Source: Raja brachyura | Lineage: Eukaryota | Length of the DNA stretch: 64,000 bases | Reading direction: 5' to 3' | Assembly (NCBI GenBank): GCA_963514005.1 | Contig: OY740797.1 | Location: 19,654,001 to 19,718,000 of the forward strand | Part shown: positions 1-64,000 of the stretch, piece after piece | Position numbering within the stretch: the stretch's first letter is position 1 | How the letters are laid out: the number at the start of each line of letters is the position of its first letter | Translations under genes and position numbers: made by a program | The notes under the pieces: generated by a model | Told to the model about the DNA's origin: nothing | What the model saw: only the letters and a program-made list of their open reading frames with translations | The model's database searches: none

Positions 1-711
1 GTGGCAACTATGGTCACTAAGTTTGCTATGCCGTCGCTGGTTTGGGAGCCTCCAGAAGAAGAGCTCGCAGCCAGCATTAACTATCTGGCTTCCCATCAGC
101 TGCAGGAGCAGGTTATGATGGAGACAGCCATGAAGTATCATGCTCCTAGCAATTGTACTGCCCTGAAGGTACCCATGGTCAATAGTTCTATCTGGAGCTA
201 TATCGGCAGCGTCATAAAGACCCAAGGGATCAAATTGCAGAGAATCCTGAATCTGCTGGCGTCAGGGCTGACAGCATTTGCCAGGTCGATGGCTGCGTAT
301 TATCGGAGGCTCAAAGGGACTGAGTTTGAAATGAACTGTTTTCGCAAGAATGCCATTCGTTCTGTTCTCAACCCCAAGTTTGCGGGGTTGTGTAAGGCCA
401 GTAATGTGCAGCCGCCCAATTTGCTGTTGGGAGACAACCTGCCCAGGCAGGTGAAGGATTTGGATGATGAGTCAAAGGCTGTGGGGCTACTGCGGGCTCC
501 ACCACCTAACAGACAACCGTTCCGACCCCAGCACCCCTACACTTCGATCAGCGGAAGACCCAATTTAGTAGACCACCTCCAACTTGAAGAACCAAAAAAC
601 CAGCCGGAGGTCTTTTTTAGGACATGGCCAAGATGCGCAGCTGGCGCACATCAGCACCTCAACTCCCCAAACATCGGGGAAGGAAATAAATGTTCAGAGT
701 CCACCGACTAA
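1..711 (+). pseudogene. DIRS gag-like ORF remnant
   Basis: P-x-N-C-x-x-L-x-V-P-x-V-N-x-x-I-W and LLGDNL-type segments resemble DIRS ORF1; lies immediately upstream of the RT. Confidence 0.65.
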
Positions 712-823
712 TGCGGAGGTAGGTGGGTCTGGGTCTCAATGTGACATACTGGGTGTGGGCTCATTGCATGTTGGTGGTAGATTACGTTTCTTTGTGCATG
801 AGTGGTGATGGTTAACTTCTGAC

Positions 824-2076
824 TTGTTCATACTGCACAGTATAGAGGGGTTCAAAATTGAGTTTGCGGGCTCTCTCCCACCCATGCAGCATACTCCAAA
901 TCGTACCTTTACTCGTTCAAAGTGGGATGATTTGGAAGTTCAGGCTGAAATTGATAAGTTATGTGCTAAAAGAGTGATTGAAAAGACCAGTCATGAACCT
1001 CATTAATTCGTATCCAATATCTTCCCTAGGGATAAGAAGGATGGGGGATGTCGCATTATTTTGGATTTAACCCAACTTAATACCTTTGTGCAGTACAAAC
1101 ATTTCAAAATGGAAAGTTTAATAACGGCAAAACAGCTAATTTCCAGGGGATGTTATATGGCATGCATTTATCTTAAAGATGCTTATTATTCTGTACCTAT
1201 TCACAAGGATCACAGAAAATACTTGAAGTTTAAATGGATGGGGCAGCTATGGCAGTTTAAAGCGTTGCCGAATGGGTTAACCTCAGCTCCCAGGTTGTTC
1301 ACTAAAATATTAAAAACCTGTGCTGGCTCTGTTAAGAGAGCAGAAACACATAGTTTGGCTTATTCGGATGATATCCTCATTATAGAGAAAACCATGGAGT
1401 TGGCGGTTTCAGCCACCAAATTAATGTTTGAACAGCTGGGGTTCTTAATTCACCCTGAAAAATCCAGGTTGACTCCATCCAGGGTTATGGATTATTTGGG
1501 ATTTACTATTAATTCCAATCACCTATTAATCACTTTGCCTGAGGGCAAGAGATTGAAGTTAATAGAAGCCTGCAATCATCTGATCACACAACAGCTGCCT
1601 TCAATTCGACACATAGCTAGCTTAATTGGGAAATTGGTGGCTACATTTCCAGCTGGCAAATACGGGCCTTTGCACTATCTGCAATTATTTTACAGACTGA
1701 TGCAAGTTCTCTGGGGTGGGGCGCCACTGACACAGTTACAAGCTGCGGTGGCAGGTGGAATATGCATGAGATATCTTTTCTGCAGATGCTTGGTGTTAAC
1801 TATTTGGAGTGGCTCGCAGCCCTGTATGGCTAGAAAGCTTATTGTGCACATATGCACGTTCAAATACAGATCGATAACACCACAGCAGTGGCATATATAA
1901 ATCACATGGGTGGTATCAAGTCAGTATCCTGTGATAATTTGGCATACAGTATCTCATTTGGAAATGGTGTATTGCTCAACATATTTGGGTTTCAGCTATC
2001 TACTTTCCAGGTAGATTCAACACGGTGGCGGACACAAGGTCACGAAAATTCAATGACAACACAGAATGGGTGTTGA
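824..2076 (+). pseudogene. DIRS reverse transcriptase / RNase H, frameshifted
   Basis: DLTQLNTFVQYKHFKME, LKDAYYSVPIH, FKALPNGLTSAPRLFTK, AYSDDIL (YxDD), YLGFTINS; RNase H-like IDNTTAVAYINHMGG; split across several ORFs. Confidence 0.9.
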
Positions 2077-2345
2077 ATCATAGAGTGTTTAAGGATATTA
2101 TTTCTAGGTATGGAGCACCGGATATGGATTTGTTCGCTTCAAAGCTAAACCATCAATTACCCAAGTATGTTGCATGGGAACTAGACCCTGGGGCAGCAGC
2201 GATAGATGCTTTTTTGCTACATTGGGGTGCAATATTTTTCTATGCATTTCCCCCATTTTGCCTTGTCAGTCGCTGTCTGCAAAAAATTCAGCAGGACTCT
2301 GCCTCCAGCATTCTGGCAGTCCCTGACTGGCCGACTCAGCCCTAG
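2025..2345 (+). pseudogene. DIRS DNA N6-adenine methyltransferase-like domain
   Basis: DLFASKLNHQLPKY ... DAF ... YAFPPF ... VPDWPTQP motifs typical of the MT domain after RNase H in DIRS elements; stop after PTQP. Confidence 0.8.
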
Positions 2346-2518
2346 TATCCTCTGGTTCTGAGCAGGGTTGTAGAACCTGTGTGGAAGGTTCCTAAAGGCA
2401 GTACGTTGTTAACAAACCCGGTGTCTGGTGAAATACATCCTCTCATGATCGGCTCAATTTATTGATTTGCAGGTTTTAAGAAGACCCGTTCCTTGGACTG
2501 GGACTAGCTGATCGCACG

Positions 2519-4976
2519 GTGGATGTGCTAACTGCGCCATGGAGAGGCAGTACTCAGAAACAATATGCTTCATATATCAGGAAATGGGAACTGTTCTGTG
2601 CACAGGCTGACATTTCTTATGAGGCAGTACAAATTGCTAATGTTCTGGAGTTCCTCTCAAAACTGTATTATGATGAAAAATTGAGCTACAGTGCCCTCAA
2701 TAGTGCCAGAAGTGCACTGTCATCATACCTGCTGCCATTTTCAGAACACCAACCAGTGGGGTCTCACCCTCTAGTGTCTAGGTTTATAAGGGGAGTCTTC
2801 AATTCAAATCCTCCTAGGCCCAGACATTCAGAAATGTGGGATGTAGGGGTGGTGTTAACTTTACTCCGGTCATGGTCTCCACCAACTTCCCTGTCTCTAC
2901 TCCAACTCGCGCATAAGGTGGCTATGCTGATGGCATTAGTTTCAGCACAGAGGGTCCAGTCCTTGCATAAGCTTTGTTTAGACAGGATGCTCACCTCGGC
3001 TGATAGTTTCACCTTCTTTGTGTATGAGCCTGTAAAACAGAGTTTATTGTTTATTTATTGTTTATTTGCACCGTGTTTTAAAAGAAGACAAACGATCAAT
3101 TTATAATACCATACAGTGCTGGGAGGGAAGGGAAGCCCAGAGAGCTTATACAAAGTCTGCTCCCACCTGAAAATGAGCGTTAATGGCAAATCAGGGGGTA
3201 GGAGAAATAAAAAAGACAATAATAAACAATAATACAGTTTAAGAATGAAAATTAAAAATATGAAAATAAATAAAATAATAAGGTATAGTATGAGATAAGA
3301 GTCAACAGAAGTAGTTTGAGCTCATAAATAGCATTACAAAAAGCTGGAGGTCAGATCTCAGGACATGATGAGAAACTTTTTAAGCTCAATCTTAAAGGTG
3401 GCTAAGGAGGTGTGAGACTTTAATAACAGAGGCAGGGTATTCCAAAATTTAGGACCTTTAAAAGTAATGCAATGTTGGTGTTTGGATGTTTGACAAAACG
3501 GAAGATGAAGATCATTTCTTCTTCTGGTTGGGTAATGGTGAATGTTAGAAGAAAGGGCAAAAAGATCATGAATAGAAACAGGCAAATCATGTTTACATTT
3601 AAGATATTTGAAAATACAAATACATATTTGGAGTGCATTCAATTTATCTACAGACAAAATTGAGTACTTCTTGAAGAGAGGGGCAGAAGGTTCTTGTGAA
3701 TTTGAGTGAGAAATTAATCTCATAATTTTATTCTGTATGAGTAGCTTCAAAAGATAGGAAGGATAGGTAGAACCCCAAACAATATTACAGTAATTGAAAT
3801 AAGAAAAAATCAAACTGTAATATATTGTTAGATGGGAAGACGGGTGAATAAATGCACAAACCTTTCTCAGAATACCAAACATTTTCATTGATCTTCTACA
3901 GACAATATTGATATGTTCTTTCCAAGTTAAATTTTGATCAATGGTTACTCCTAAAAATGTTGTATATGTTACTTCAGGAATTTCATGTCCATTGATAAAA
4001 ATTTTAGATTTGTCTTTGGGAAAAATTTTGTTTTTATTGCAGATCATGTAATTGCATTTTTTGATATTGAGAGCCTGTTCACTTCAAACCGCTTAGAGAC
4101 ATGAGACATTTCTTCATTAACTAATTCAACCAATGATTTTAAATCACTCTGTGAAGCTATAAGATTGGTGTCATTGGCAAACAGGATAGGAAGAGGTACT
4201 CTACAGGTATAGGATCAGTCATTTATATAGATCAAGAATAGTAAAGGACCAAGGATGGAGCCTTGTGGTACCCCACAGTGAATTCTCAACTTTTTGGATG
4301 AGCTTCCATTTAGATAGACAAATTGCACTCTATTTGCTAAATAGTTGGTTAACCATAGAAGCGCTACATCCTTTACCCCATATCTATTGAGTTTAGAGAT
4401 TAAGATTGAATGGTTGACTGTATCAAATGCCTTGGATAGATCTAGAAAGACACCAAGAGCAAATTTATTTTCATCTAGAGCAATAGAGATGTTGTTAATA
4501 AGTTGTAATAATGCATGCTCCGTAGAGTGCTTCTTCCTAAAGCCATATTGATGGTCATACAAAATATTATTCACAGTAGACCAGGCACCTCGGGATTGAA
4601 GTTACAGTTCATGGCATATCCTTTGGATCCCAATTTGTGTGTAGTAGCTCACCTCCTGCAGTACATTACCCTCACCAAGGGACTTCGGGGGTCTGAGTTA
4701 GCAGTATTGATTAGCTACAGGAAACCACATAAGCAGGTCTCAACTCAGACTATTTCCAGGTGGTTAAAGCAAGTTTCAATAAAGGCTGGGATTTATACTA
4801 AAATGTTTAAATCTCATTCCACCAGATCTGCAGCAACGGCGAGGGCCATGGACGTCCCGCTAGACCAGATTTTGTCAGCTGCAGGGTGGTCCTCAGCATG
4901 CACTTTTCAAACGTTTTATAATAAACCTTTAGCCAGAACCAGCGTGTTTGCTAACTCGGTTTTAAGCTCGCGTTAA
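2519..4976 (+). pseudogene. DIRS tyrosine recombinase, split by a LINE insertion (2519-3043 + 4578-4976)
   Basis: SAQRVQSL (catalytic R), KQS|RPG, HSTRSAA, AGWSS, FYNKP (catalytic Y); removing 3044-4577 rejoins the frame. Confidence 0.92.
3044..4577 (-). mobile_element. 5'-truncated non-LTR retrotransposon (L2/Crack-like RT)
   Basis: QYGFRKKHSTEHA, FLDLSKAFDTVNH, GVPQGSILGPLLFLIYIND, degenerate FANDTN, FLGVTIDQNLTWKEHI; AT-rich tandem tail at 3044-3067; agt duplicated at 3041-3043 and 4575-4577. Confidence 0.88.
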
Positions 4977-5181
4977 TGTCCTCTCGGGTAGAAGGGGAAC
5001 TGTTGTTGATTTGTTATCGTTAACTACACATTAAATTCAATTTGTTCATTATGTCATGTCTCTACAGTTTGTCCACTCTTCTTGGTCAACTATACAGTGT
5101 GTGACGCATGGATTCGTTCCACGGCATGGAGTCACAGAGCTTTAAAATCTTCACGTAGTCACTCGCATGACTCCGAAGTAA

Positions 5182-7212: not shown

Positions 7213-18236
<11,024 letters not shown>

Positions 18237-18680: not shown

Positions 18681-21600
18681 AAGTGATTTTGAAACAAATC
18701 TTCTGATTAATCATTCTTTTCTCCAATTTCAAGGTGAACTTTATTAGGGCTGTTTTGTAATCTGGGATATTAACTGCATATTTTGCACTTGAGTGATATG
18801 CTTGGACCATTGAGGCATATAAACAAGTGATTCTATGCAGCTATTATATGGAGTGTGTCGAGGCATTATATACTTGAGTATATTATAATGTGAAATGTTA
18901 CATCGGCAGCAAAGTAGTGATCTTGGGTATATGTGGATCTTCACAAATTCTGTCATTATGTATTCTAATTATAGATTGGTTAGGGATACTTGAAATCACA
19001 AATCGGTGCAAAACTAAATTGTGCAATGGTTGTAATTTGATCGAGCGAACATGAAAATCCATTCTTGATGTGGGTCTTGCTTGCTTTTAAGTTTAATGAC
19101 CTAGACCTTAGTGTGTATTTCCAGTTAGTTGGTGCTTGGTTCAATTTGGGGGCAAAAAACTAATTTGGAAGTTCTCACATGAAGAATCTTAGTTTATGCT
19201 GCACAATTCTGCACTTCAGTTTGGAGGATTTTAATTCCTTTCTTGGTGTATTTAAAATTATTTGCATTCCTTTTCAACAATTCCAGAAGTTGGTCATCAA
19301 AAACAGTTGGCCTTCTCAAAACGAATACCCTGACTTCAGTAACAGATGTCCTTGAATGTTTCAGATAAAGTAATGTTCAAAATGCCTTTTCTGCCATTGT
19401 TACAATATTCATGGACACATTGGAGGTCCTGAGCATTTTCCTTTTATATGTTGTCCGATTGTTTTTCATTCTGCCAAAGTTATTACAGCCTCGGCTTTGT
19501 AAGATGTGAACTGAATGAAGAAATACGTTTGCAGAATGATTAGATTTGCTTGTTTTAACTACATTCAATGCTAACTGTTTTGCCGAAATTGAACAAAAGC
19601 ATGTTGGGGTGAATTTATTGCAGAGGTGGGGTAATTCTCCGCCATTGTGTCTTGGGTGACTCTGGGCTCCCAATGGATTGTGGGGTACTGTAGATTAAGA
19701 GTCAGGCAGTGGATTTCCTTTTCTCCCCATCTATTGCCCTCAGCAACCTATCATTTTACACCAGTCCCATAATATATAATAGTACTTTGAATGCTAATTC
19801 ATGGTTGTAGATTATCCTGACCTGTACTTACCATGCTCTGCAATTTGAACATGTTGTGCCAATGTGCGTTTCCTTTACTTTCCTTCCTCTTTACTGTAGA
19901 TTGACCCTGGGTTAGCTGAGAAGGAGACGTGAATGGGCATGAGAGAAAAGAGATGTAGAAAAATGAGGAATAGGACTGCCTAGATATGATATGCATATGG
20001 CCTGCATTTAAGCCAATGTTAAATGCACCAATCTGTGCATAATAATAATAATGCACAGAAATAATTCTTTAAAATGCTGTTCTCAATTCAGCCATTCAAT
20101 GAGATTATAGATCTTCTCAACTCGATCTATGAGTATCCAAGTCTTTTCGTCCAAATATTTGAACGGGCAAAAGTCACTTCGCTCAAGGCCTTGGAGTGCA
20201 CCTTGTGGTTCCGCACTGCCGTAATCACTTTAGGGAACAATGGATTTATCTCCTGGTTCATTGGTTGGCAATTCTTTCTGTTTTGTATCAATACAGATGC
20301 CAGTCACAACAACTGATAATCTTCAAGCCGTGGATAATTTGGAAAGACAGTTTTAATGAAGTGATAATAAAATTATTTTTATAAAATTTAAGTAATGGGC
20401 ATTTTCTTATAGAACATAAGCTCACTTTGTGAAATGTTGGTAACATTGCACCAATTGTACTGTCCAGCAGCGTAAAAGAGGATAGGTTTTTATGTTTGCA
20501 CCTGTATAACACTGGTATTACTGTTCTTGCTTTCGTCTTGGAAAGCACTGGTTATTAACATGTCAGCTTCCGATTCTGTCAAGGTATTTCCTCTGTTGCA
20601 AATGATAGCGATCCTCTTCACTGATCTGCGATGTGGATCCTTACACTTGGACGTCAGCAATAAATGGCAAGTGATAAGGTTGTGCATCTTCACTCATTCA
20701 TAGTCCCGTTTCCCCTTTGAAAGATTTATTTCTGCGTATACTGGGCGTTCGTTCTTGGGTTTAGGTACTGATTTAATGGATTTGGAAAACTGCAGAGCAG
20801 CGTAAGTAGGCTTGTCAGCTTCGCTTCCTTTGGTCTGTGAAAGTCATTAAATATCGAATGTTAGTAAATACACGAATAGATTTTGTTTTCAAAAATCGAT
20901 CATTGATTAATACCAGATAGCTACTTTTAAGTATTTTTCTTACTCCAATTTTTTATTTTAATTATAAAGCAATGTTTATTTCTGCACTTAATGTTCATAC
21001 TAGGTTATTGCTAGTGTAATCTCCTAGGAAGTGTAGGTAAAGATTTAAAGTACTACTTTTTCGGTATGCTAATACATTAGTTCGGCGTTCAACTAGTGTT
21101 TGGTGTTCCTTCCCAGAAAGCGAGTGGTGTTTATACACTGCCTGTTACAACCAGGCTTGCAGGGCCAGGTACCTGGTTATGGACACGACTCACCTCTGGC
21201 ACAACCAGGCAATACAAAAGTCAGTGACCTAGTCGAAGACTCGCCCATGTGGAAGGAACCACCTTAATATGCGACAGCTGTCTGTGTGCTGCTATCGGTT
21301 GGGATGGGGCAAACACGGAGGCCGCGGTGTGTTATGCAAGGTATAGTGAAACATCCAGTGAGTGCAGGTCATTGCTACAGAAAAGCAGCTGCGCGCCCTA
21401 CAAATCCTCCCTCGCCTCCTGCCAACTGTGATGGAAGTCACCTTGTGGCCAAAATATGTATCCTACCTTATCGAGCCGTGAACCTGTCCAAGTGTCTTTT
21501 ATATATTGTAAATTTACCTGCCCCACACTTCCTCCGACTGCTCGTAAATCACCCTTTTGGTGAAAAAGTTGCTCCAAAGGCCTCTTTTACATACCTCTCT

Positions 21601-27044: not shown

Positions 27045-28608
27045 CAGTGGCTTGCAAAAGTATTCATACCCCTTGAACTTTTCCACATTTTGTCACGTTA
27101 CAACCACAAAAGTAATGTATTTTATGTGGTAGACCAACACAAAGTGGTGCATAATTGTGAAGCGGAGGGAAAATGATACATGGTTTCCAAATTTTATTAC
27201 AAATAAAAAAACTGAAAAGTGTGGCGTGCAAAAGTCTTCAGACCCCCATGAGTTAATACTTTGTAGAACCACCTTTCGCTGCAATTACAGCTGCAAGTCT
27301 TTTGGGGTATGTCTCTACCAGCTTTGCACATCTAGAGACTCAAATCTTTGCCCATTCTTCTATGCAAAATAGCTCACGCTCAGTCAGATTGGATGGAGAG
27401 CGTCTGAACAGCAATTTTCAAGTCTTGCTAGAGATCCTCAATTGGATTTAGGTCTGGACTTTGACTGGGCCATTCTAACACATGAATATGCTTTGATCTA
27501 AACCATTCCATTGTAGCTCTGGCTGTATGTTTAGGGTCGTTGTCCTGCTGGAAGGTGAACCTCTGCCCCAGTCTCGAGTCTTTTGCAGACTCTAACAGGT
27601 TTTCTTCCAAGATTGCCCTGTATTTGGCTCCATCCATCTTTCCATCAACTCTGACCAGCTTCCCTGCCCCTGCTGAAGAAAAGCATCCCCACAGCATGAT
27701 GCTGCCACCACCATGTTTCACAGTGGAGATGGTGTGTTCAGGGTGATGTGCAGTGTTAGTTTACCGCCACACATGGTGTTTTGCATTTAGGCCAAAAACA
27801 TCAATTTTGATCTCATCAGACCAGAGCACCTTCCTCCACATGTTTGCTGTGTCCCCCACATGGCTTGTGGCAAACTGCAAACGGGACTTCTTATGGCTTT
27901 GCTTCAACAATGGCTTTCTTCTTGCCACTCTTCAATAAAGGCTCGATTTGTGGAGTGCACGACTAATAGTTGTCCTGTGGACAGATTCTCCCACCTGAGC
28001 TGTGGATCTCTGCAGCTCCCCCAGAGTTACCATGGGCCTCTTGGCTGCTTCTCTGATCAATGCTCTCCTTGCCCGGCCTGTCAGTTTAGGTGGACGGCCA
28101 TGCCTTGGTAGGTTTGCAGTTGTGCCATACTCTTTCCATTTTCGGATGATGGATTGAACAGTGCTCCGTGAGATGTTCAAAACTTGGGATTTTTTTAATA
28201 ACCTAACCCTACTTTAAACTTCTCCACAACTTTATCCCTGACCTGTCTGGTGTGTTCCTTGGGCTCCATGATGCTGTTTGTTCACTAATATTCTCTAACA
28301 AACCTCTGAGGCCTTCACAGAACAGCTGCATTTATACTGAGATTAGATTACACTCTATTTACTAATTAGGTGACTTCTGAAGGCAATTGATTGCACTGGA
28401 TTTTATTTAGGGGTATCAGAGTAAAGGGAGCTGAATACGTTTGCAAGCAACACTTTTCGGTTTTTTTATTTGTAAAAAAATTTCCTTCCACTTCACAATT
28501 ATACGCCACTTTGTGTTGGTCTATCACATAAAATCCCAATAAAATACATTTACGTTTGTGGTTGTAACGTGACAAAATGTGGGGTATGAATACTTTTGCA
28601 AGCCACTG
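27045..28608 (-). mobile_element. Tc1/mariner DNA transposon, near full length, frameshifted transposase
   Basis: TIR cagtggcttgcaaaagtattcatacccc at 27045 and inverted at 28581-28608, TA at right flank; [41 protein letters not shown]-terminal GGSTKY*. Confidence 0.95.
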
Positions 28609-29637: not shown

Positions 29638-32600
29638 CTAATAATGACCTGCAATATTTCTTCTTCTGCACTCGACATGTATTAACTCTATGTTCCTGTT
29701 TTCTGAAATACTATTAGGATATTAAAGCAATTGGCAAAAATAAATAACGGTCTTACCATTTGTTACGTTTAGTCTGCGTACTGTCAACATTATTATCGGG
29801 ACTAAAATTGCCAATCCGCCCACTACACATCCGAGAACCAGTGCGAGATTATAGTCTGCAGGAGAAGCAGATACGTTTAAAACTGTAAAACATATACATG
29901 AAGACACTGGTGAGAAATTGGGAGTCAAGAGGGCAGAGCACTCCGAATGTGTCTTTTTATCCTTGGTGTACAAGCATTCCAATATATACCTAATGGAACG
30001 AATTGCATTAATTGCAAGTTAGCGGAGAAATATATATCGTCTGCTTTAATCTGTCATTTTCAGATCGGACATCTCTTTCTACACTTCCATATGTCTAGTT
30101 ACCCTCTCCACTGACTCTCAGTCTGAAGAAGTGTCTTGACACGAAACGTCACCCATTCCTTCTCTTCAGTGATGCTGCTTGTCCCGCTGTTACACCAGCA
30201 TTTCATGTCCATTTTCGGTGTAAACCATCATTTGCAGTTCTTTCCAACACAGATGAATGTTAAACACGTAAATCGTGTCACATAATAATCCAATGAGCTT
30301 CTCTTTGTGCATGAAGGTTACTTATGAAGTGTAAAGTGAGACATGCTTTTCTCTTAGCAGATTCCATGTTTTGGGACTGGCGTACAGCACCTGATTCTAC
30401 AGCTTTTAAGGTGTAACAAAATCAACTTACTTTTACCTTTGCAAGCCTTTAACGTGTTAAAATATTTCAAGAAACTTTACAGGAAGACCTTTCAACAAAA
30501 TGTGCCTCCAAATCGCAGATTATGAGAAATTAGGAGTCATAGCACGGAAACGGGTCATTCCGCCAAACCCATCCATGCCGAGCAAATTGCCCAACCGAGC
30601 TAGCCCCAGCTGCCTGCCGTAGGAAATCAACAGGCTTAGCTGCATTGCTGGAGGGAAATGACGTTTCGAGTAGTGACCCTTCTTCAGATACCCTCCGCAG
30701 ATGCTACCTGGCATGCTAAGTATCTCCAGAACTTTGCAGATGCTGGAAACTTGTAAAAAGCAATCTCCTTTGCCTCCTACTTACCTGCTCCTGGCACATA
30801 TCTCTTCAAACCGTTCCCGTCCTTATGGAGGAGACATGGTACTTGGTAGAAATGGTAGAATTAAACTAACATTTAAGGGGAGGTTATAAGACAGAAGGGC
30901 ATGGAGGGGCATAGTGTGGGTAGTTGGAGGGTTCATGGACAGTAAACGGATGAGAGTAATTACATTTGAATACAACTGGACGAATATATTGACATTTCAT
31001 GTTGGTAAACTTATATGGACTAGAGGATAAGATCAGATGACCTCTCTGGGTATTTTGCAAGATTGTGGTCGTTCCTCGATTATAATCCATTTTTTGCCCA
31101 TTGTTTATACCTTTTGATTTTAAAACAAAAAAGATCTGGGTAAAACTGACAAGGCCAGCACACACAGTATTCCCAATTCATGCTTGTCCTTCACAATGTG
31201 GCAGTGAGCAGGCTTTGTGAATCACTGCAGTCCTCTCAGTGAAGATAATTCCACTGTGTTATTGGGTAGGGAGTTCCAGGATCAAATCCAAGCGACGATA
31301 CGGACGATTTATTTACAAGACATGATGGTGTGTGACTCGGAAGGGAATTCTGCAGGAGATGGCGCGTTCCTATACACCTGTTGCCCTTGATCATCATTTT
31401 CGAAAACTCAATTGACCTCAGCTCTGAAATACAAGATTATGGATCTGCGATGTTCCGAGGTACGGAATTACAAAGATTCACGCATCTCTGGGAAGTGAAA
31501 TTTCGCCTTAATACAAAAGTTAAAAGCCGACTTCCTGTCTTAAAGAAAATATGTCTTGTTCAGAGCATTCTCCTTCCCCGTTCGTCATATTATGTCCCTT
31601 TGTAGTCGAGAGTTGAATGTTTGCTTGCTACACCACAGTTTGCTGTTTCACACACACGATATACATTACACGTATAAATTAATCTCACGCAGTTCGAATT
31701 GAGAAAATATAGCGCTAAATGATACATTAGGTTGCTTGCACATCGATATTCTACTGTGAATAAATAGGTTAACATTTACTACTCCACGTACAGTATTCGG
31801 CCTGATGTCTTCTCTAAATCGGATCGGCGGTTCCCAGCTCTGTTTGCCAATCTTACCTGGCTTGACCGTGTAGTCAACTCTGGCCGGGAGCGCAAGGGAG
31901 ACATGTGACACTAGGCAGGTGTAAATATCAATACGCCAGGTAGGCTTCGTTACTTCGAGAAAACTGGAAGCCACATACAACCCCTCCACGCTACTGGTGT
32001 TCACAGTTTTTTCCCCGGTGAAAATTGTTACACCATTTCTTTGCCAGGATATTTCGACTTCCTTCGGAAAAAAGGCAGCCGTTTGACACACAAGGTTTGG
32101 CGGCGAACTGCCATTAACTTGGCTAATGCTCAGGGGAGTTGGCGGAGCTGTAACAGAAGAAAAAAAAGTTATGTTGTATGTCTTCTTTCCATGTCAATGA
32201 ATACTTTGTGGTACAACTTGTGAAGACAACGCAGTATCAGACTGGATGGACTCGGCTTGTACTCGCTAGAATTTAGAAGATTGAGGGGGGATCTTATAGA
32301 AACTTACAACATTCTTAAGGGGTTGGACAGGCTAGATGCAGGAAGATTTTTCCCGATGTTGGAGAAGTCCAGAACAAGGGGTCACCGTTTAAGGATAAGG
32401 GGGAAGTCTTTTAGGACCGAGATGAGAAAAACATTTTTCACACAGAGAGTGGTGAGTCTCTGGAATTCTCTGCCACAGAAGGTAGTTGAGGCCAGTTCAT
32501 TGGCTATATTTAAGAGGGACTTAGATGTGGCCCTTGTGACTAAGGGGATCAGGGGGTATGGATAGAAGGCAGGTACGGGATACTGAGATGGATGATCAGC

Positions 32601-35374
32601 CATGATCATATTGAAAGGGCGGTGCAGGCTCGAAGAGCCGAATGGACTACTCCTGCACCTATTTTCTATGTTTCTATGTTTCTAAGTCCACATGGGTTGT
32701 CGGTACGTTCACTTTTAAACTAATGGAGTTATCACTGATTTATAGTTCGTCTTACCATGGACAGTAAAATACATTCAAGGAGCACATAGGAATGTGATGT
32801 TCGATATAAGTGATATGCGGATAATGTCCCGTTGTTCTGAATGGAAGTGCCAGATTTAGCGCGCCGAAGAAGCTGGCAGCAATATTTAGTAACTACATCA
32901 GCAATGACTGTGTGTAACATGTTTGTTGCAAAGAATGATACAGGTCCGGTGTCGCCTGCACGCTGAATATTAAGCACATGTTAATGAATCCCATTTTCTT
33001 GTCGCATCCATATCAACTGTCCTCATTCTTCCCCGCCACAATCAATTATCAAGGGATAATTTACAGCTGGTTACCCTGCCAACCAGCGAAAAGTTGGCAA
33101 TGGGTACGTTAGCGTAGCAACGGAAAAAAACACGAATTTGCGAGGAGATTGTTAAACTGCACACATACCAACGAATCCAGCCCTGTATATATTCACATCT
33201 CGCCGATGCATATGGTCTAGGGTCAGGGTTTGGCTACATCTATCGATCTGAGGTTTGTCCCCATAATAGTTCAGAGACTGGGAGTGAGAGTTCAGATGAA
33301 GTAACTTTCACAAGGAAAACCTTTTTCCAGGCCGCGATATACGGTATGATTGCACACGGTATGATTGAGTTATACTGACAATTGGTTGATAATAACAAAT
33401 AAAGGTGATAGAACGTGCAAGTGACTTCCAATGTCACAACACATTTCATCTATATCTACTGCCTTTTCTAAATTTGCTCGATATATTGAACACATTCCAT
33501 CTAAGTAAGATTCTATTGAACCGAACTCCATATTTGTCATTTACGAACACTGATATTTCTCAGTTAAATCTACAGTCAGTGTTTAGCTGGAAGGACAGCC
33601 TCTTGCTAAGGTGTATTGGGAGTCTCGTACAAGCAATCTGTTGGACATCTGTTTAAATCTTCTTACATTCCGTTTTTATACTAACAAGTTATTGAATAGG
33701 GATCATTATTGCCTTCGGAAGAGAGTTTTGTGTTTATTCTCAACCTCAGCGAGTGCACTACCAGCTAACACTCAGAGTTTATCCATGACACAAAAACAGA
33801 TTATTTTATGTGGAATAAATATTCGTTGCGAAGTTCAGTGACAGCGCCGTTTTACTCGCAGACATTTCAACCGAGGGTCGATCAAATAGAACAAGTTGTC
33901 CAACAACATTAGGCTGTGCACGCCACACGAAAGAAGAGGAAGAATCGAGGGTCGTGTAAATGGAAACCACGATTTGCAAGGACAGGAGCACCGCTGTTCC
34001 CTCAAACGACCTGTACATTCTGTTCGTGCTTTACAGATATTTGGCGGTTAAATAAAAATGCTCGAATACACAAAAACGTAACTCAGCGCGACAGACAGCA
34101 TCTCCAGAAAGAAGAATTGGGTGACGTTTAGGGTTGAGACACTTCTTCAGTCTGAATCGTCACTCTTTCCTTCTCTCCAGAGATGCTGCCCGTCCCGCCG
34201 AGTAACTCCAGCATTTTTTGTCTATCTTTATTCCATCCAAATCATGAGAGTTCCCTTTATTTACCCTTTTCCTTAAGGATAACACTAATAGATTTCGGGA
34301 AATAACAATAACAAGTATTGTTTAGACAATTTGTAGCGGTTGCGTCAAAAAGGATAAGATTGTGTGTGGACTGTGGGTGGACACTGTTCTGGCGAGGTTG
34401 TAACCGTGAGGAAAAAGCCGCCATACTTCCCACAGTCCAGATTAAATATCCAAGTGGCTTGAACATCTTCCCTGAAAAACAATGTAGTCACTGAACCATG
34501 GGAATGACGAAGAGTGAATCTGAATCGTGGGCGATAGCAGCCCGACTCTACAGGAGGACAAAGGAAAAGGCTTTCTGGGAGCACGAAACGAGAACAACCC
34601 TCCCTCGCCACACACATGCTGCCCGATCAGCTAATTATTTCCAGGCATTTCAGTTTTCAAGTCGGCGGAGTGGTTTGATTTCATAACAAAAAATCCATTA
34701 TTAGTAATCACCCAGTTTTAACCCAGTGATAAAATGTAATGTTATTCGCATTGGAGAGCTTAATTTATACTACAGAGAGCTTAAGTTCTCTCCGTCATGG
34801 GATGCTTACCCATTACAGTGAGCCTGGAGCCAGGTCCATCTCCGATAGATTGCTCCTGATGTTTCACTTTACAATAATAAACCCCGGAGTCCGCGACTTT
34901 CGCATTCAGCAGAACAAAATCCGCACTGCCCTTTTTGGTATCAATTATTTTTCTGCTGTCTGGTTCTATAAATGTCTTCTCTCCCCATCTCCACCAATAA
35001 ACATCAGGAGCAACTTGTTGTATTGAGAATGTGCAGAACATGGACGCATTGCTTCCTCTGTGGACGGTCAGGTCTTTCGGGAATTGGTCCACTTTGGTCG
35101 AAGTTACTTCGTTGGCTGCCAGAAATTAAGGAAAAATACTGAAAACAGTTCCACAGACTGGACAAGGAAAATGAATCAAGAGTTGAAAATTACAAAACTA
35201 AAATAGAATTAGCGACAAGCGAGCTGGAGAAGCACTGTAACTAAATTCGCAGTGGGTAACTAAATGGAGTATTCTAAAAGAATTAAATAAGATGGACCAG
35301 CACATATATCTAAAAGTACCTTGCCAAACTGTCACCAGAAGGGTCATGTACCGAAATGATGCTTTCACTGTCAT
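29638..35374 (-). CDS. Ig-superfamily receptor A: leader - germline VJ - C1-set - TM - short tail (NKp30/SIRP-like, antigen-receptor-like, non-rearranging)
   Basis: Phase-1 GT-AG exons: L 35374-35320, VJ 35115-34810, C1 32147-31857, TM 29855-29757, tail 29702-29638 (3' end uncertain); frame open throughout. Confidence 0.85.
29757..29855 (-). CDS. Receptor A transmembrane exon (uncharged)
   Basis: DYNLALVLGCVVGGLAILVPIIMLTVRRLNVTN; tctcctgcag acceptor, gtaaga donor. Confidence 0.85.
31857..32147 (-). CDS. Receptor A C1-set domain exon
   Basis: LVCQTAAFFPKEVEISWQRNG...GLYVASSFLEV...YTCLVSHVSL; 291 nt, phase 1-1. Confidence 0.93.
32240..32685 (+). mobile_element. Young CR1 LINE 3' end in the receptor A V-C1 intron
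   Basis: YSLEFRRLRGDLIETY...TRGH...FFTQRVVSLWNSLP; (ttctatgt)n tail. Confidence 0.92.
34810..35115 (-). CDS. Receptor A single-exon V-set (VJ) domain
   Basis: VDQFP...ASMFCTF...VYWWR...ADFVLLNAKVADSGVYYCKV...GDGPGSRLTV; tttctggcag acceptor, gtaagc donor. Confidence 0.93.
35320..35374 (-). CDS. Receptor A leader exon
   Basis: MTVKASFRYMTLLVTVWQ + phase-1 donor caag|gtact, 205 nt upstream of the V exon. Confidence 0.65.
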
Positions 35375-39490: not shown

Positions 39491-40835
39491 CCATCTCTAT
39501 AATACTAAAACTCTTCCTATTGTTTGTGTTTGTGCTGACAAGTTGCCCACGATGTTTCAATCTGCTTGTCCTATCTTCTTCCAACCGCTAGGCCACAGCC
39601 TTCCCATTTTCACATATCCTACTCACATTTTTCCCATCGAGGTGATAAACATCTTCCTGTCGCAGTCCCGCCTATATTTCCGAAGTTATTAATCCTTTAA
39701 ATTTAAAAAGCAGCCCCAAAAACTCATCCATTTTAGAAAAAAGAACCCAAATGACGTCCCAATGCACGCACAAGGCAGGGCGTGACGCTCCAGGAGGGAG
39801 GGACACTCCAGCGCTCGTGGTGAACGAGGAGGTACGGTGGCTGCAGGCGCCTGATGTCCAAACCTGGTGGGAGGGTGGTGCTGGAGTGAGAGCCGAGGCC
39901 GGGGCTTGGGATGGGGCCGTAACAGGGGCCCAAGAAAGAAGCTGCTGCTGGAACTAAGGACGCGCCTGGGTCTAGCGTTAGGGACGAACCCAGAGATGAA
40001 GTCCGGGCCTGGACTGGAGCCCAGGCAGCAGCCGCAGTGATGACTGGAGTCTGGAGATGAAGTTGGGGCCTTTACTGGAAGCCAGGCAGCAGTTCAGCTG
40101 ATGACTGGAGTCTACAGCCAGGGCCGGGCCCAGTTCCAGGCCCCGGGGCTGCTCTACGACCTGGATAGGTGCTGGGGCAGGGAATGGGGGTGAGGGGAGG
40201 AGAATGAGGGGGAGGGAGATGTGGTGGGGAATGCGGTGGTAGAGGGAGATGGGGGGGGGGGGGTGCAGTATGGAGATGGGGAAGGGTGGAGGAGGGAGAT
40301 GCCCCTTCCCTATCTACCCCCTCCCTCTCCCTCCCTTTCCCTCTCCCTCTCAACCATCCCTCCGCCTCACTCTGCCCCCTCCCTCCCTCTCTGCCCCCTC
40401 CCTCCCTCTCTGCCCCCTCCCTCCCTCTCTGCCCCTCTCCCTCTATCCCCTCCACCTCCCTCTACCCTCCCTCTCTACTCCCCCTCCCTCTCTACCCCTT
40501 CCCCCTCCCTCTCTACCACCTTTCCCTCTCTAGCCCCCTCCCCCTCCCTCTCTACCCTATCCCTTTTTGCCCCCCCTCCCTCTCTACCACCCCTCCCTCT
40601 CTACCACCCCTCCCTTCTCTAGAGATTGAAGAGGTAGGGTGAAGAGGAGGAGGAGGGAGTGCTGGGGGATGAGGAGAAACGGGCCACGCCTGCGCAGTTG
40701 GGGACTATGCGTGAGTGGTGCATTGGGGGAACGGCTTACGTTGGCGTAACGGGTGAGTGGTGTAATCTTGCGTTGGGGGAACAGGTGAGTGGTGGAATCT
40801 TGCGTTGGGGGAGTAGACCTGTGCTTGGTCTGGTC
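39491..40835 (-). mobile_element. Putative non-autonomous Helentron/Helitron-like element with internal minisatellites
   Basis: Minus strand starts accagaccaag and ends ttttagtattatagagat; GC-rich body, ttgcgttggggg repeats, C/T-rich tract; interrupts an older CR1 tail. Family assignment is from recall only. Confidence 0.4.
40300..40620. repeat. CT-rich low-complexity tract (ccctctctacc-like units)
   Basis: Polypyrimidine tandem repeats that generate spurious Pro/Ser/Leu ORFs. Confidence 0.9.
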
Positions 40836-49987: not shown

Positions 49988-52900
49988 CTAGCATGATCTG
50001 TTAAAGAAACAAAGCATTTAAAGTTTATATCAACTGAATTATTGTGATACGTGTTTCTCGTCCCCTAACGTTCTTACCCGTTTTCGATCACGTGCTCGGA
50101 GGTCTTTCCATGTTCCTCTCTGTTCATAGTTTGCTCTGATGTCTCGACCAATCGGTCAACCTTTACCACGGAGCCTAGACAGGAAGACAAATTAATTGGG
50201 TGCTATAATGCAGATTTGGCGATCGTGAGTTATTTTGAATGTTAACATATTTTCTTACACCACTCTTATTATTATTATGTGCCGACAAGATATCCAATGG
50301 GCGCCGATTCCCAATTGCCCATTTTGTGCTCCCGACTAAAATCGATTTGTAGCCTTTGTCTCCAGATGGGTTCGAAGTCAAGGCGAGAGAATCACTACTA
50401 AATTATACTCTGAATAATACTCTGCATGTCAGTTTTGAAGACATTCCCAACGCTTCATCGGACAGGGATCAGCCTTGGCTGGCCTCCACCCTTCAGAAGC
50501 AAAAACAATGAGATGGGGACCAATTCGGGCAGATGCAGAAATCATAACATTCAGCGGAGTCCCGACTGTCCACAAACATGAAAGAAGGAACGGCGATAGT
50601 GCCGACAACTTTTAAATCAAGTGATTGGGAAATAACCAATTTATCCAATATGCATTGGCCCAAGATAAGCAGTTGCACAAAGCTGTTACTTGAGGAAGAA
50701 AACCGCTGCACGTGGCGACGTCTAAATTACAACCGCTCTCATTTATTTTCCTATTAATATAATCGTTTTATAACAGTTCGATTAGAAGACGGTATTGTTA
50801 TCCTTGATATTAACGATGATGAACAATTTATTTTTCTAAGCTCTTTCAATGCCCTCTTTTGATTTGGCGTTTATAAGTGAATTTGGAACACTGGTGATAG
50901 CGGAGACTTGACGGGATTGTTGTCCTCTGTGAGTCTGGGGATGGAGAACTGATATAATTCTGTACCATTTGGGGGATCACGATCTTGTTATTAACAACGT
51001 GTAAATTGTGGCCAAATAGCATAAAATGACGTCGCGATATTTGATTCTCCGCAGCACCATTTTACAGGAAATTTGAAGTTGAACTCTAGAAAGAAGCTTG
51101 ATTCACCTTTGGCAGAGCTTGATCCAAAAACAATTCGCAAGGTAGCCAACACCAGTAGAATGATCAATGTACCTCCTACATTGCGAAGGACATGGACAAC
51201 GCGAGCTGAACCTGCAGACGTAAAAAATCATTGAGCGATAAGACAATTATCTCAAGTGAATGAACAAGCTATAGAATTTTATTTGTGTAAAGAGCTTTAT
51301 CAAGTGTCACTATACTACAAAAATATCCAAATAAAATAGCAACATTAGGCAAATGGACACTGCACAAAATAAACGAGAGATCTTGCTTCCAACATGAACA
51401 ATATTGTTATTGCATTAAATGTCAACGAGTGATACATTTCCAAGTCAAGCTAGTGTGCGATTTGGAAGACAGCCTGCAGGCCATGGTGTTCACATGCACC
51501 AGCTGCCCTTGTCCTTGTTGGTGATCCAACCAGTCCAGAAATCTATCAATGTCAATCCTCCCTTTTCAAACATCCTCAATGCTTCGAGGTAGGGAATTAC
51601 AAAGATTCACACATCCCCGACTAGAGTCATTGAGTCACAGAATGATACAGTGTGGAAACAGGCCCTTCGGCCCAACTCGCCTACACCGGCCAACAATATC
51701 CCAGCTACCCTAGTCCCACTTACCTGTGCTTGGTTCATAACCCTCCAAACCTTTCCTATCCATGTACCGGTCCAACTGTTTCTTAAACGATGGTACAGTC
51801 CCAGCCTCAACTACCTCCTCTGGCAGCTTGTTCCATATACCCTCCACGCGAAAATGTTACCCCTCGGATTCCTATTAAATATTTTCCCCTTCACCTTGAA
51901 TTAATGTCCTCTGGTCCTCGATTCCCCTACTCTGGGTAGAATCTGTGTATCTACCCGATCTATTCCACTCATAATTTTGTATACTTCCATAAGATCTCCC
52001 CTCATCCTCCTACGCTCCATGCAATAGAGACCCAGCCTACTTAACGTCTCCCTGTAGCTCACACCCTCTAGTCATGGCAACATCCTCGTAAATCTGTTTA
52101 AGAAGGAACTGCAGATGCTGGAAAATCAGAGGTAGATAAAAATGCTGGAGAAACTCCTCGAAATACTCTTTGAGGTCATTACCCATCGGTGGCTCCGCAC
52201 AGAAGTGACCGCTTTTATCCCCGAGAGGTCCCAATCTCTCTCTAGTTATCTTCCCCCCCCCCCCCCCTTTATTTATAAAATCATTTCGGATTTTCTTCTA
52301 TGGTACCCGCCGGGGCTATCTCTTGGCCCATTTTTGCCCTTTTTAGTTTGTTCCTTATTTCCCGAAACTCCTACAGGGATGCACGTCCCAACTGCCTGTA
52401 CCTGTCCCATGCATCCTTCTTGTTTTTGACTAATGTCTCAGTTTCCCTTGTCAGCCAAGCTTCCTTTCGTTTGCCTGCTTCGCTTTTCACTCTAACGGGG
52501 ACGTACACATCCTGAGCTCTCTTAAGTAAACTTTTAAATACATCCCACTTGGCCGATGTTCCTTTCCCCTCAAATAACCTGCTCCAGTCAACTTGTGCTA
52601 GACCTTCTCTCATACCCTCAAAATAGTGAAATATCTCAACATTACAAAGTAAAATCCCGACTTATATATAAAGAACGTGTACCTCTATCTCCATCTCACT
52701 GATTGTGTCCTTTTGATGATTTTTTGTTTGCTAACACCCCTGTCAAATGCCTTGAAGGTTTAGTCACGTCACAGCACTATAAATATTGAAGATGCAGATA
52801 TAATTTAGAAAACAGATTATAGCATATGCGTCAGTTTGCCCGAACTCCCGCGGTGAATAAACACGGTTCACATTCAGCCCTTCTCGTCGTGTTTGAGCTG

Positions 52901-53254
52901 TATCCAACAATATTTATAAATCGGAGGTCTCCCTCTGTTCCCAGTTCTGTTTGCGAGTCTTACCTGGCTTGACTGTGCAGTCGACTCTGGCCGGGAGCGT
53001 AAGGGAGACATGCGACACTAGGCAGGTGTAAATAACAACGCGCCAGGTAGGCTTCGTTACTTCGAGAAAACTGGAAGCCTCATACAACCCATTCACACTA
53101 CTGATATTCACAGGTTCTTCCCCGGTGTAAATTGTGACTCCATTTCTTTGCCAGAATATCTTGACTTCCTTCGGAAAAAAGGCAGCCGTTTTACACACAA
53201 GTCTGGGCGGCGAACTGCCTTTAATTGGGCTAATGTTCGGGGGAGTAGGCGGCG
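49988..53254 (-). CDS. Ig-superfamily receptor B, partial: C1-set - Arg-containing TM - Tyr-free tail (no leader or V exon found in window)
   Basis: C1 53254-52964, TM 51211-51107, tail 50174-50078, last exon 49997-49988 (GSC*); GT-AG with compatible phases 1,1,2. Confidence 0.75.
50078..50174 (-). CDS. Receptor B cytoplasmic exon
   Basis: GSVVKVDRLVETSEQTMNREEHGKTSEHVIENG; ttcctgtctag acceptor, gtaaga donor. Confidence 0.65.
51107..51211 (-). CDS. Receptor B transmembrane exon (charged)
   Basis: GSARVVHVLRNVGGTLIILLVLATLRIVFGSSSAK; tttttacgtctgcag acceptor, aaag|gtgaat donor. Confidence 0.75.
51620..52620 (-). mobile_element. CR1 LINE fragments in the receptor B C1-TM intron
   Basis: MREGLAQVDWSRLFEGKGTSAKWDVFK and CR1 3' tail. 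Confidence 0.8.
52964..53254 (-). CDS. Receptor B C1-set domain exon
   Basis: APPTPPNISPIKGSSPPRLVCKTAAFFPKEVKIFWQRNG...YTCLVSHVSLTLPARVDCTVKP; 19 of 97 aa differ from receptor A C1. Confidence 0.92.

Positions 53255-55615: not shown

Positions 55616-64000
<8,385 letters not shown>

Follow-up and report, generated by a model that had tools for sequence, protein, structure and literature searches.

Based on an exon-by-exon search of a 64,000-nucleotide stretch of the Raja brachyura genome (contig OY740797.1; hereafter the window, in which all coordinates are given), we identified on the minus strand, beside NUDT21, a real and intact-looking, non-rearranging receptor gene, here called gene A. 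Its predicted product consists of a variable (V) domain of the immunoglobulin (Ig) type with a built-in joining (J)-like strand, one C1-set constant domain and a transmembrane (TM) segment. Judged by sequence similarity, gene A belongs to a large receptor family, as yet unnamed, that occurs across sharks, rays and chimaera, and this family is a multigene set of type I membrane receptors of cartilaginous fish. The explanation that we favour, with a probability of roughly 0.55, is that gene A is an intact germline-encoded member of this family and of an inhibitory type comparable to the SIRP and NITR receptors.

Structure of gene A

An earlier analysis of the letters alone (the sequence-only reading) had proposed a leader, a V, a C1 and a TM exon that are all joined in phase 1. 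This was borne out, and the exact junctions were located on the minus strand. The four exons, together with two that concern the 3' end of the gene, are listed below (a slash marks the exon boundary).

35374..35320, minus strand: leader exon; ATG at 35374, encodes MTVKASFRYMTLLVTVWQ and ends one base into a split codon; donor CAAG/gtac
35115..34810, minus strand: V exon with built-in J-like G strand; exactly 306 nt, phase 1 to 1; acceptor ggcag/, donor ATGG/gtaagc
32147..31857, minus strand: C1-set exon; 291 nt, phase 1 to 1
29882..29757, minus strand: stalk and TM exon; TM segment ALVLGCVVGGLAILVPIIMLTV; donor AATG/gtaaga
29702..29638, minus strand: candidate fifth exon; 65 nt, entered in phase 1 after a 54-nt intron, ends TAG/gtatga
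20834..20694, minus strand: family-type terminal cytoplasmic exon; acceptor cacag/, phase 0; TKGSEADKPTYAALQFSKSIKSVPKPKNERPVYAEINLSKGKRDYE followed by a stop codon

Every leader/V/C1/TM junction is in phase 1. The leader resembles those of relatives in other species, for example MSVRASVQYMALLGMVWP in the Heterodontus relative P0152. The frame of the 306-nt V exon is unbroken from the A strand through C27...W40W41...DSGVYYC81 to IGDGPGSRLTV, so that the V domain runs straight into a J-like G strand, as had been proposed, and no V-J joining is needed because the J-type strand is encoded in the V exon itself. Separate V and J segments flanked by recombination signal sequences (RSS) are not what gene A has, its V and J-like parts forming one open reading frame (ORF) in one exon. 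The reported lack of an RSS at this exon also held on a wider search, as no CACAGTG/CACTGTG heptamer turned up to a distance of 3 kb from the V exon and the whole of 29-36 kb was free of nonamers. A single C1 exon lies between V and TM, and no second C1 or other Ig-like ORF was found in 29.7-35.4 kb. The TM exon has a second good acceptor between 29856 and 29855, giving an alternative start at 29855. Its TM segment has no charged residue, belongs to the class 'GC.GG.AIL' and is homologous to the TM segments of P0152 and of the Pristis relative P0169.

The differences listed for other genomic contigs, from three samples, include no indel in the exons of gene A, and 3/5 of the visible exon substitutions are synonymous; this variation is weak evidence for constraint on the gene. 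At 31932-31933 in the C1 exon (Ile to Val plus a silent change), and at 29875 in the TM exon (silent), the window differs from all three other samples, which reflects either alleles peculiar to the assembled individual or a divergence between species.

The introns of gene A contain short repeats of very high copy number at 29988-30250, 32240-32700 and 33870-34255, with summed contig depths of hundred-thousands to millions in every genomic run examined. The repeat at 32257-32565 carries an open frame of 102 codons, typical of the tail of a short or long interspersed element.

Identity of the V and C1 domains

The second domain of gene A is a true C1-set domain, as the sequence-only reading had held, and Pfam, PDB profiles and the predicted fold agree on this. 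The C1 exon matches Pfam C1-set (PF07654) with E=5.7e-14 and 52.7 bits against a gathering cut-off of 21, compared to an E of only 0.0036 for the B7-type C2-set_2. Its sequence matches in the PDB are Ig, UrIg2 and other C1 domains, the best single-domain matches being the UrIg2 C1 domain (28 bits) and the Ig lambda constant domain. An AlphaFold model of the domain, built with 40 family sequences, has a mean confidence (pLDDT) of 86.3, and its best Foldseek matches are the beta-2 domains of major histocompatibility complex (MHC) class II molecules and beta-2-microglobulin (TM-scores of 0.74-0.86).

The V exon gave near-equal Pfam matches to I-set (3e-9), ig (5e-9) and V-set (1.4e-8), of which only V-set spans the entire exon, G strand included. 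In the AlphaFold model (pLDDT 91.9) the strands A, A', B, C, a one-residue and thus vestigial C', D, E, F and G are present and C'' is missing, and the G strand is broken at Gly-Pro-Gly, forming a J-type bulge. The Cys-Cys span is 54 residues. The earlier description of a full V domain therefore stood for the V character and the J-type G strand, but not for the length: according to the model, the domain is a short, truncated V of VNAR/I-set-like form with a built-in J. Shark VNAR domains rank first in Foldseek (E 7e-9, TM-scores of 0.77-0.82), and the best V-type sequence match in the PDB is also a VNAR (4hgk, E 4.7e-6). In VIA-align, VNAR, the V-alpha domain of the T-cell receptor (TCR), VL and NCAM Ig1 are tied at Z 14-15; the structural scores being tied, no special kinship of the gene A V domain to VNAR is shown.

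A receptor family of cartilaginous fish

A HMMER scan with the V exon, covering 1.84 billion representatives, gave two kinds of matches. One kind consisted of giant multi-Ig proteins that score by summation, and the other of single-stretch matches with 40-69% identity in proteins of 240-400 residues with a V-C1-TM(-ITIM) architecture, ITIM being the immunoreceptor tyrosine-based inhibitory motif. The latter share one plan, namely a leader, a V domain (VYWWK.GE, DSG.YYC, GNG.GS.L.V), a PPTPL hinge, a C1 domain with YTCLVSH and a TM segment, with tyrosines of the LTYAAL and VYAEV types in the tail that often follows. The genera represented are Heterodontus, Scyliorhinus, Heptranchias, Mustelus, Pristis, Hemitrygon, Hypanus, Mobula, Narcine and Callorhinchus, and database predictions of the family include XP_067906043 (Heterodontus), XP_038662025 (Scyliorhinus) and XP_007902825. 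Their automatic names clash (SIRP-alpha-like, NCR3LG1-like, tapasin-related, Ig lambda-like, TCR beta-like, class II-like and PD-L1-like), and such conflicting names are the mark of an unrecognised family. Among the 74 relatives retrieved, 31 have an ITIM-type tail, 23 a TM segment with a short tail, 10 a TM segment of an R...DH type, and another 10 have no TM segment.

Gene A has all the V motifs of the family (Q.P / G.N...C / VYWW[KR].GE / DSRK / DSG.YYC / G[ND]G.GS.L.V) as well as the PPTPL hinge and the C1 motif C.TA.F[YF]P...W...GLY..SS.L...YTCLVSH, and every family-invariant residue is kept in its V and C1 exons. The V domain is 69% identical to that of Heterodontus P0152 and 61% identical to those of the Pristis and Hemitrygon genes, and the C1 domain is 50-57% identical to those of batoid and shark members. 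A V tree placed gene A in an elasmobranch clade with an SH-aLRT branch support of 98, a more careful V tree left it unresolved at the base and outside the other batoid group, and the C1 tree placed it in a batoid clade (98) as sister to the C1 exon of a second receptor locus in the window, gene B (100).

No one-to-one orthologue of gene A was identified, and no orthology to an already characterised gene, which would have spoken against a new family, appeared. A protein search with Pristis P0169 gave no skate orthologue from collections that hold no skate proteins. A word-index search with the C1 domain, limited to 8 candidates by a sparse index, gave no match, whereas the HMMER scan found the family. 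In the literature search, work on UrIg/UrIg2 and reviews on NITRs turned up and no paper on the family of gene A. The proposal of an uncharacterised receptor family beside NUDT21 thus stood as far as the literature goes, but the gene is not a private oddity, its family being chondrichthyan-wide and already present in databases as automatic predictions.

The 3' end and the putative inhibitory tail

At the 3' end, where the fifth exon is unsupported and a homologous terminal exon is present at 20834..20694, the five-exon model of the sequence-only reading is probably incorrect or lacks a part. The peptide of the candidate fifth exon was compared with the juxtamembrane segments of relatives, and 198/200 shuffles scored as well. 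A match of 11 amino acids to a repeat in P0152 (E 1.6-6.7) was discarded as chance. Without a fifth exon, the ORF of the TM exon, read through, stops 11 codons past the donor.

The terminal exon lies approximately 9 kb downstream of the TM exon of gene A and contains two tyrosine motifs, PTYAAL and PVYAEI. Its homology to the last exon of the family was seen in tblastn with 7 relatives (E down to 5e-6) and in blastp to P0192 (1.4e-8), and its stop codon is at the same place as in the last exon of the relatives. Relatives with the 'GC.GG.AIL' class of TM segment, to which gene A belongs, continue after the TM into tails with tyrosines resembling those of the ITIM and of the immunoreceptor tyrosine-based switch motif. 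Isoforms of relatives show a TM exon that both begins and ends in phase 1, from which an exon of about 44 nt with little conservation bridges to phase 0; in P0161, P0163 and P0187 the small post-TM exon can be joined to the last exon without an intervening exon.

By analogy with SIRP-alpha and the teleost NITRs, the V domain would bind a ligand via its loops that resemble complementarity-determining regions, and the two tail tyrosines (in PTYAAL and PVYAEI) might then be phosphorylated and recruit SH2 phosphatases. Through this recruitment the receptor would damp the activation of the cell.

Several points weigh against an inhibitory gene A. The splice junctions are predicted from genomic DNA, three of the four sequencing runs compared with the stretch being genomic and the fourth, presumed to be RNA, covering only high-copy repeats. 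No way of splicing the TM exon in frame to the terminal exon was found, a direct splice from the canonical donor being out of frame. The fifth exon has the right phases for a link but ends in TAG; as it is the sole visible candidate for a linker, the assembled product may be short-tailed and signalling-inert like SIRP-gamma. Both tyrosine motifs have Pro at position -2, compared to Leu, Val or Thr in most relatives, and the closest batoid V sequences (P0169 of Pristis and P0186 of Hemitrygon) are annotated with tails of 3-8 residues.

A search for cytoplasmic exons in 20.8-29.7 kb with the tails and the TM and juxtamembrane pieces of relatives gave nothing above noise, nor did the 323 open AG...GT candidates of length 3n+2 in the same interval. 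Since the linking exon is poorly conserved in relatives, a failure to detect it by similarity is expected.

Comparison with known receptor families

A profile of the family aligned continuously with domains 1-2 of SIRP-alpha in two stretches (104 bits in total), whereas single V-C stretches gave 71 bits for Ig lambda, 68.7 for Ig kappa and 52.8 for the first V-C1 stretch of UrIg2. The resemblance of the VJ-C1-TM layout to an antigen-receptor chain, which had been pointed out before, is reflected in the approximately 70 bits with the Ig lambda and kappa V-C units. Judged by these scores, the family may be placed about equidistant from antigen-receptor chains and SIRPs, and by analogy its function would most resemble that of the SIRP/NITR kind of paired innate receptor.

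Like the SIRP family (SIRP-alpha/beta/gamma; PDB 2wng, 4i2x), gene A encodes a type I membrane protein in which a V domain that does not rearrange and has a J-like G strand precedes a C1-set domain, and within both families ITIM-tailed, alternative-TM and short-tailed forms occur. In addition, 'SIRP-alpha-like' is the automatic NCBI name of many members of the skate gene's family. However, the SIRP ectodomain is V-C1-C1, while gene A has one C1 and a shorter V without C''; the alternative TM of the family carries R...DH instead of the single Lys of SIRP; the family is restricted to cartilaginous fish; and the scores of Ig light chains are close to those of SIRP.

The NITRs are a diversified germline multigene family of the VJ type with inhibitory (ITIM) and activating members, and are seen as innate equivalents of the antigen receptors (PMC7916673, PMC2442602). 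They are known only from bony fish (PMC6795676, PMC7916673). Compared by description only, they are like the family of gene A in being a diversified germline VJ-type family with ITIM and alternative forms, but NITRs have an I-type second domain or none, whereas that of gene A is C1-set by Pfam and predicted fold. The number of C1-type domains is three in UrIg and nine in UrIg2, UrIg exists in a secreted form only, and both are disulfide-linked homodimers that are linked to the MHC or to an antigen-receptor complex (PMC12227049). Like gene A, they are specific to cartilaginous fish and have a non-rearranging single-exon VJ followed by C1-type domains (PDB 9dmx for UrIg/UrIg2), but gene A lies beside NUDT21, has only one C1 and lacks a stalk cysteine, and the tail of its family is of the ITIM type.

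The remaining candidates share parts of the layout. VNAR domains, which also have no C'' and are the top Foldseek matches, are made by RAG rearrangement and sit on five constant domains of IgNAR. NKp30 (NCR3) has a non-rearranging VJ-type domain as well, but no constant domain and an Arg in its TM segment, in contrast to the C1 exon and the uncharged TM of gene A. B7-H6 (NCR3LG1) combines a V with a C1-like domain, and some family members are automatically named 'NCR3LG1-like'; B7-type constant domains, however, match Pfam C2-set_2, whereas the C1 of gene A favours C1-set. A germline-joined Ig light chain is secreted and has no TM, unlike gene A with its TM exon, and light-chain V domains score approximately 28.6 bits with the V of gene A, compared to 100-144 bits within the family.

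Alternative explanations

The most serious alternative is a short-tailed, non-signalling form like SIRP-gamma or a decoy, which we regard as tentative and clearly less probable than an inhibitory receptor. The protein would end approximately 10-30 residues past the TM helix, by read-through or with the TAG-ended fifth exon, and its role would be confined to binding a partner, to adhesion or to competing for the ligand of inhibitory as well as activating relatives. Besides the two stop codons, this would agree with a TM that has no charged residue to couple an adaptor, with the short tails of 23/74 relatives, among them the nearest batoid V sequences, and with no other tail exon being detected over 8.9 kb. 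Against it, a terminal exon of the family type, its ORF intact and its stop codon in the conserved place, is still present downstream on the same strand; the linking exon of the relatives is too short and too poorly conserved for detection by similarity, so that missing it means little; and some of the short-tailed database models may be incomplete predictions. Gene A is thus most likely of an ancestrally inhibitory type and still so, with a short-tailed, SIRP-gamma-like product as a substantial alternative. That gene A is instead a decaying copy or pseudogene in an unstable, recently duplicated region appears unlikely. The TAG that closes the candidate fifth exon, introns full of transposons, and the fate of the neighbourhood, where only a C1 exon is left of gene B and the second NUDT21 copy is cut short by a 40.3-kb tandem duplication, would fit decay. 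However, none of the leader, V, C1 and TM exons is interrupted, their splice sites fit the consensus and all the invariant residues of the family are kept, the exon variation in the three other samples contains no indel among the listed differences and is for 3/5 synonymous, and the ratio of nonsynonymous to synonymous substitution rates (dN/dS) between the C1 exons of genes A and B is 0.57, not 1.

Very improbable, in our view, is a germline-joined Ig light chain, a TCR-like chain or a direct relic of the antigen-receptor precursor from before RAG. The VJ-C1 order, the J-like GxG bulge and the phase-1 exons speak in its favour, as do the family profile that spans V-J-C of Ig lambda and kappa and the first stretch of UrIg2, and the C1 matches to UrIg2 and Ig lambda. 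The light-chain or TCR reading is already contradicted because of the TM exon and the family-type ITIM tail exon, which light chains do not have. Moreover, the J motif has no Phe/Trp of FGxG (family consensus GNGxGS; DGPGS in gene A), no RSS and no split V/J relatives were seen, and SIRP-alpha scores as well as the Ig chains. The V domain scores 100-144 bits with the family but about 29 bits with light chains, TCR or VNAR, so that the placement of the V domain inside germline-joined light chains, which the sequence-only reading had kept in mind, did not come about. It is also a very doubtful, though slightly less remote, idea that the family is a surviving germline lineage near the stock of the rearranging V-J-C1 receptors, or of the C''-less IgNAR V. 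What prompts it is the layout, in which a V without C'' has its own J strand and leads directly into a true C1 domain and a TM. If so, the family would supply outgroups with which, alongside UrIg and UrIg2, the origin of those receptors could be tested.

Surroundings of gene A

A complete-looking NUDT21/CFIm25 gene is located on the plus strand at 10149-16671, with four exons that match Pfam NUDIX_2 (E 1e-7 to 1e-23), and stands tail to tail with the receptor terminal exon at a distance of approximately 4 kb. The segment 15342-24909 recurs at 55616-63854 with 94-98% identity, pointing to a tandem duplication of about 40.3 kb. In the second unit only the last two NUDT21 exons (near 55986, and at 56829-56945) and a copy of the terminal exon are present; because the unit starts inside a NUDT21 intron, the second NUDT21 is a 3' fragment. 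An in-frame loss of two residues, at LFLVQEKG, was observed in this fragment. Two further receptor exons belong to this part of the window.

61161..61021, minus strand: duplicate terminal exon; second copy of the 40.3-kb duplication, 4 nt differences and 1 amino-acid change
53254..52964, minus strand: gene B C1 exon; 80% amino-acid identity to the C1 of gene A, splice sites kept

For gene B no leader, V or TM exon was found nearby, with no V exon in 53.3-64 kb and no TM exon near 51.5 kb. The boundary of the duplication lies 2.3 kb upstream of its C1 exon, and this exon was probably cut off from its 5' exons by that boundary. A retroelement ORF is present just downstream of the exon (52374-52661), and a match to 'QTKGSLADK' at 52473..52447, below the gene B C1 exon, was rejected as part of this ORF.

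Elsewhere, a DIRS-like retroelement occupies the plus strand within 1-5000 (reverse transcriptase at 1007-1897, pieces of a tyrosine recombinase at 2480-3103 and 4512-4973) and is interrupted by a minus-strand fragment of a non-LTR reverse transcriptase at 4218-4601. A remnant of a Tc1/mariner-type transposase (HTH_Tnp_Tc3_2, DDE_3) lies at 27431-28213 on the minus strand, between the TM and terminal exons of gene A. A Pro/Ser/Leu-rich low-complexity tract at 39650-40640 has internal tandem repeats and is open in several frames on both strands, and no gene could be assigned to it.

Significance

No living lineage that possesses antibodies and T-cell receptors is older than the cartilaginous fish, and genes that do not rearrange and place a VJ domain on a C1 domain serve as models of the target that the RAG transposon invaded. 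Gene A is a further member of its family and not a unique relic, and the value of its locus is the more modest one of adding a member with an ancestral-looking V domain (that shared at 69% identity with the horn shark) and of documenting recent duplication and truncation in the cluster. The wider meaning lies in the family, as skates, sharks and chimaeras carry, besides the published UrIg and UrIg2, a large and diversified family of two-domain VJ-C1 membrane receptors. With its inhibitory, alternative-TM and short-tailed forms, this family is a likely counterpart in cartilaginous fish of the SIRPs and the teleost NITRs.

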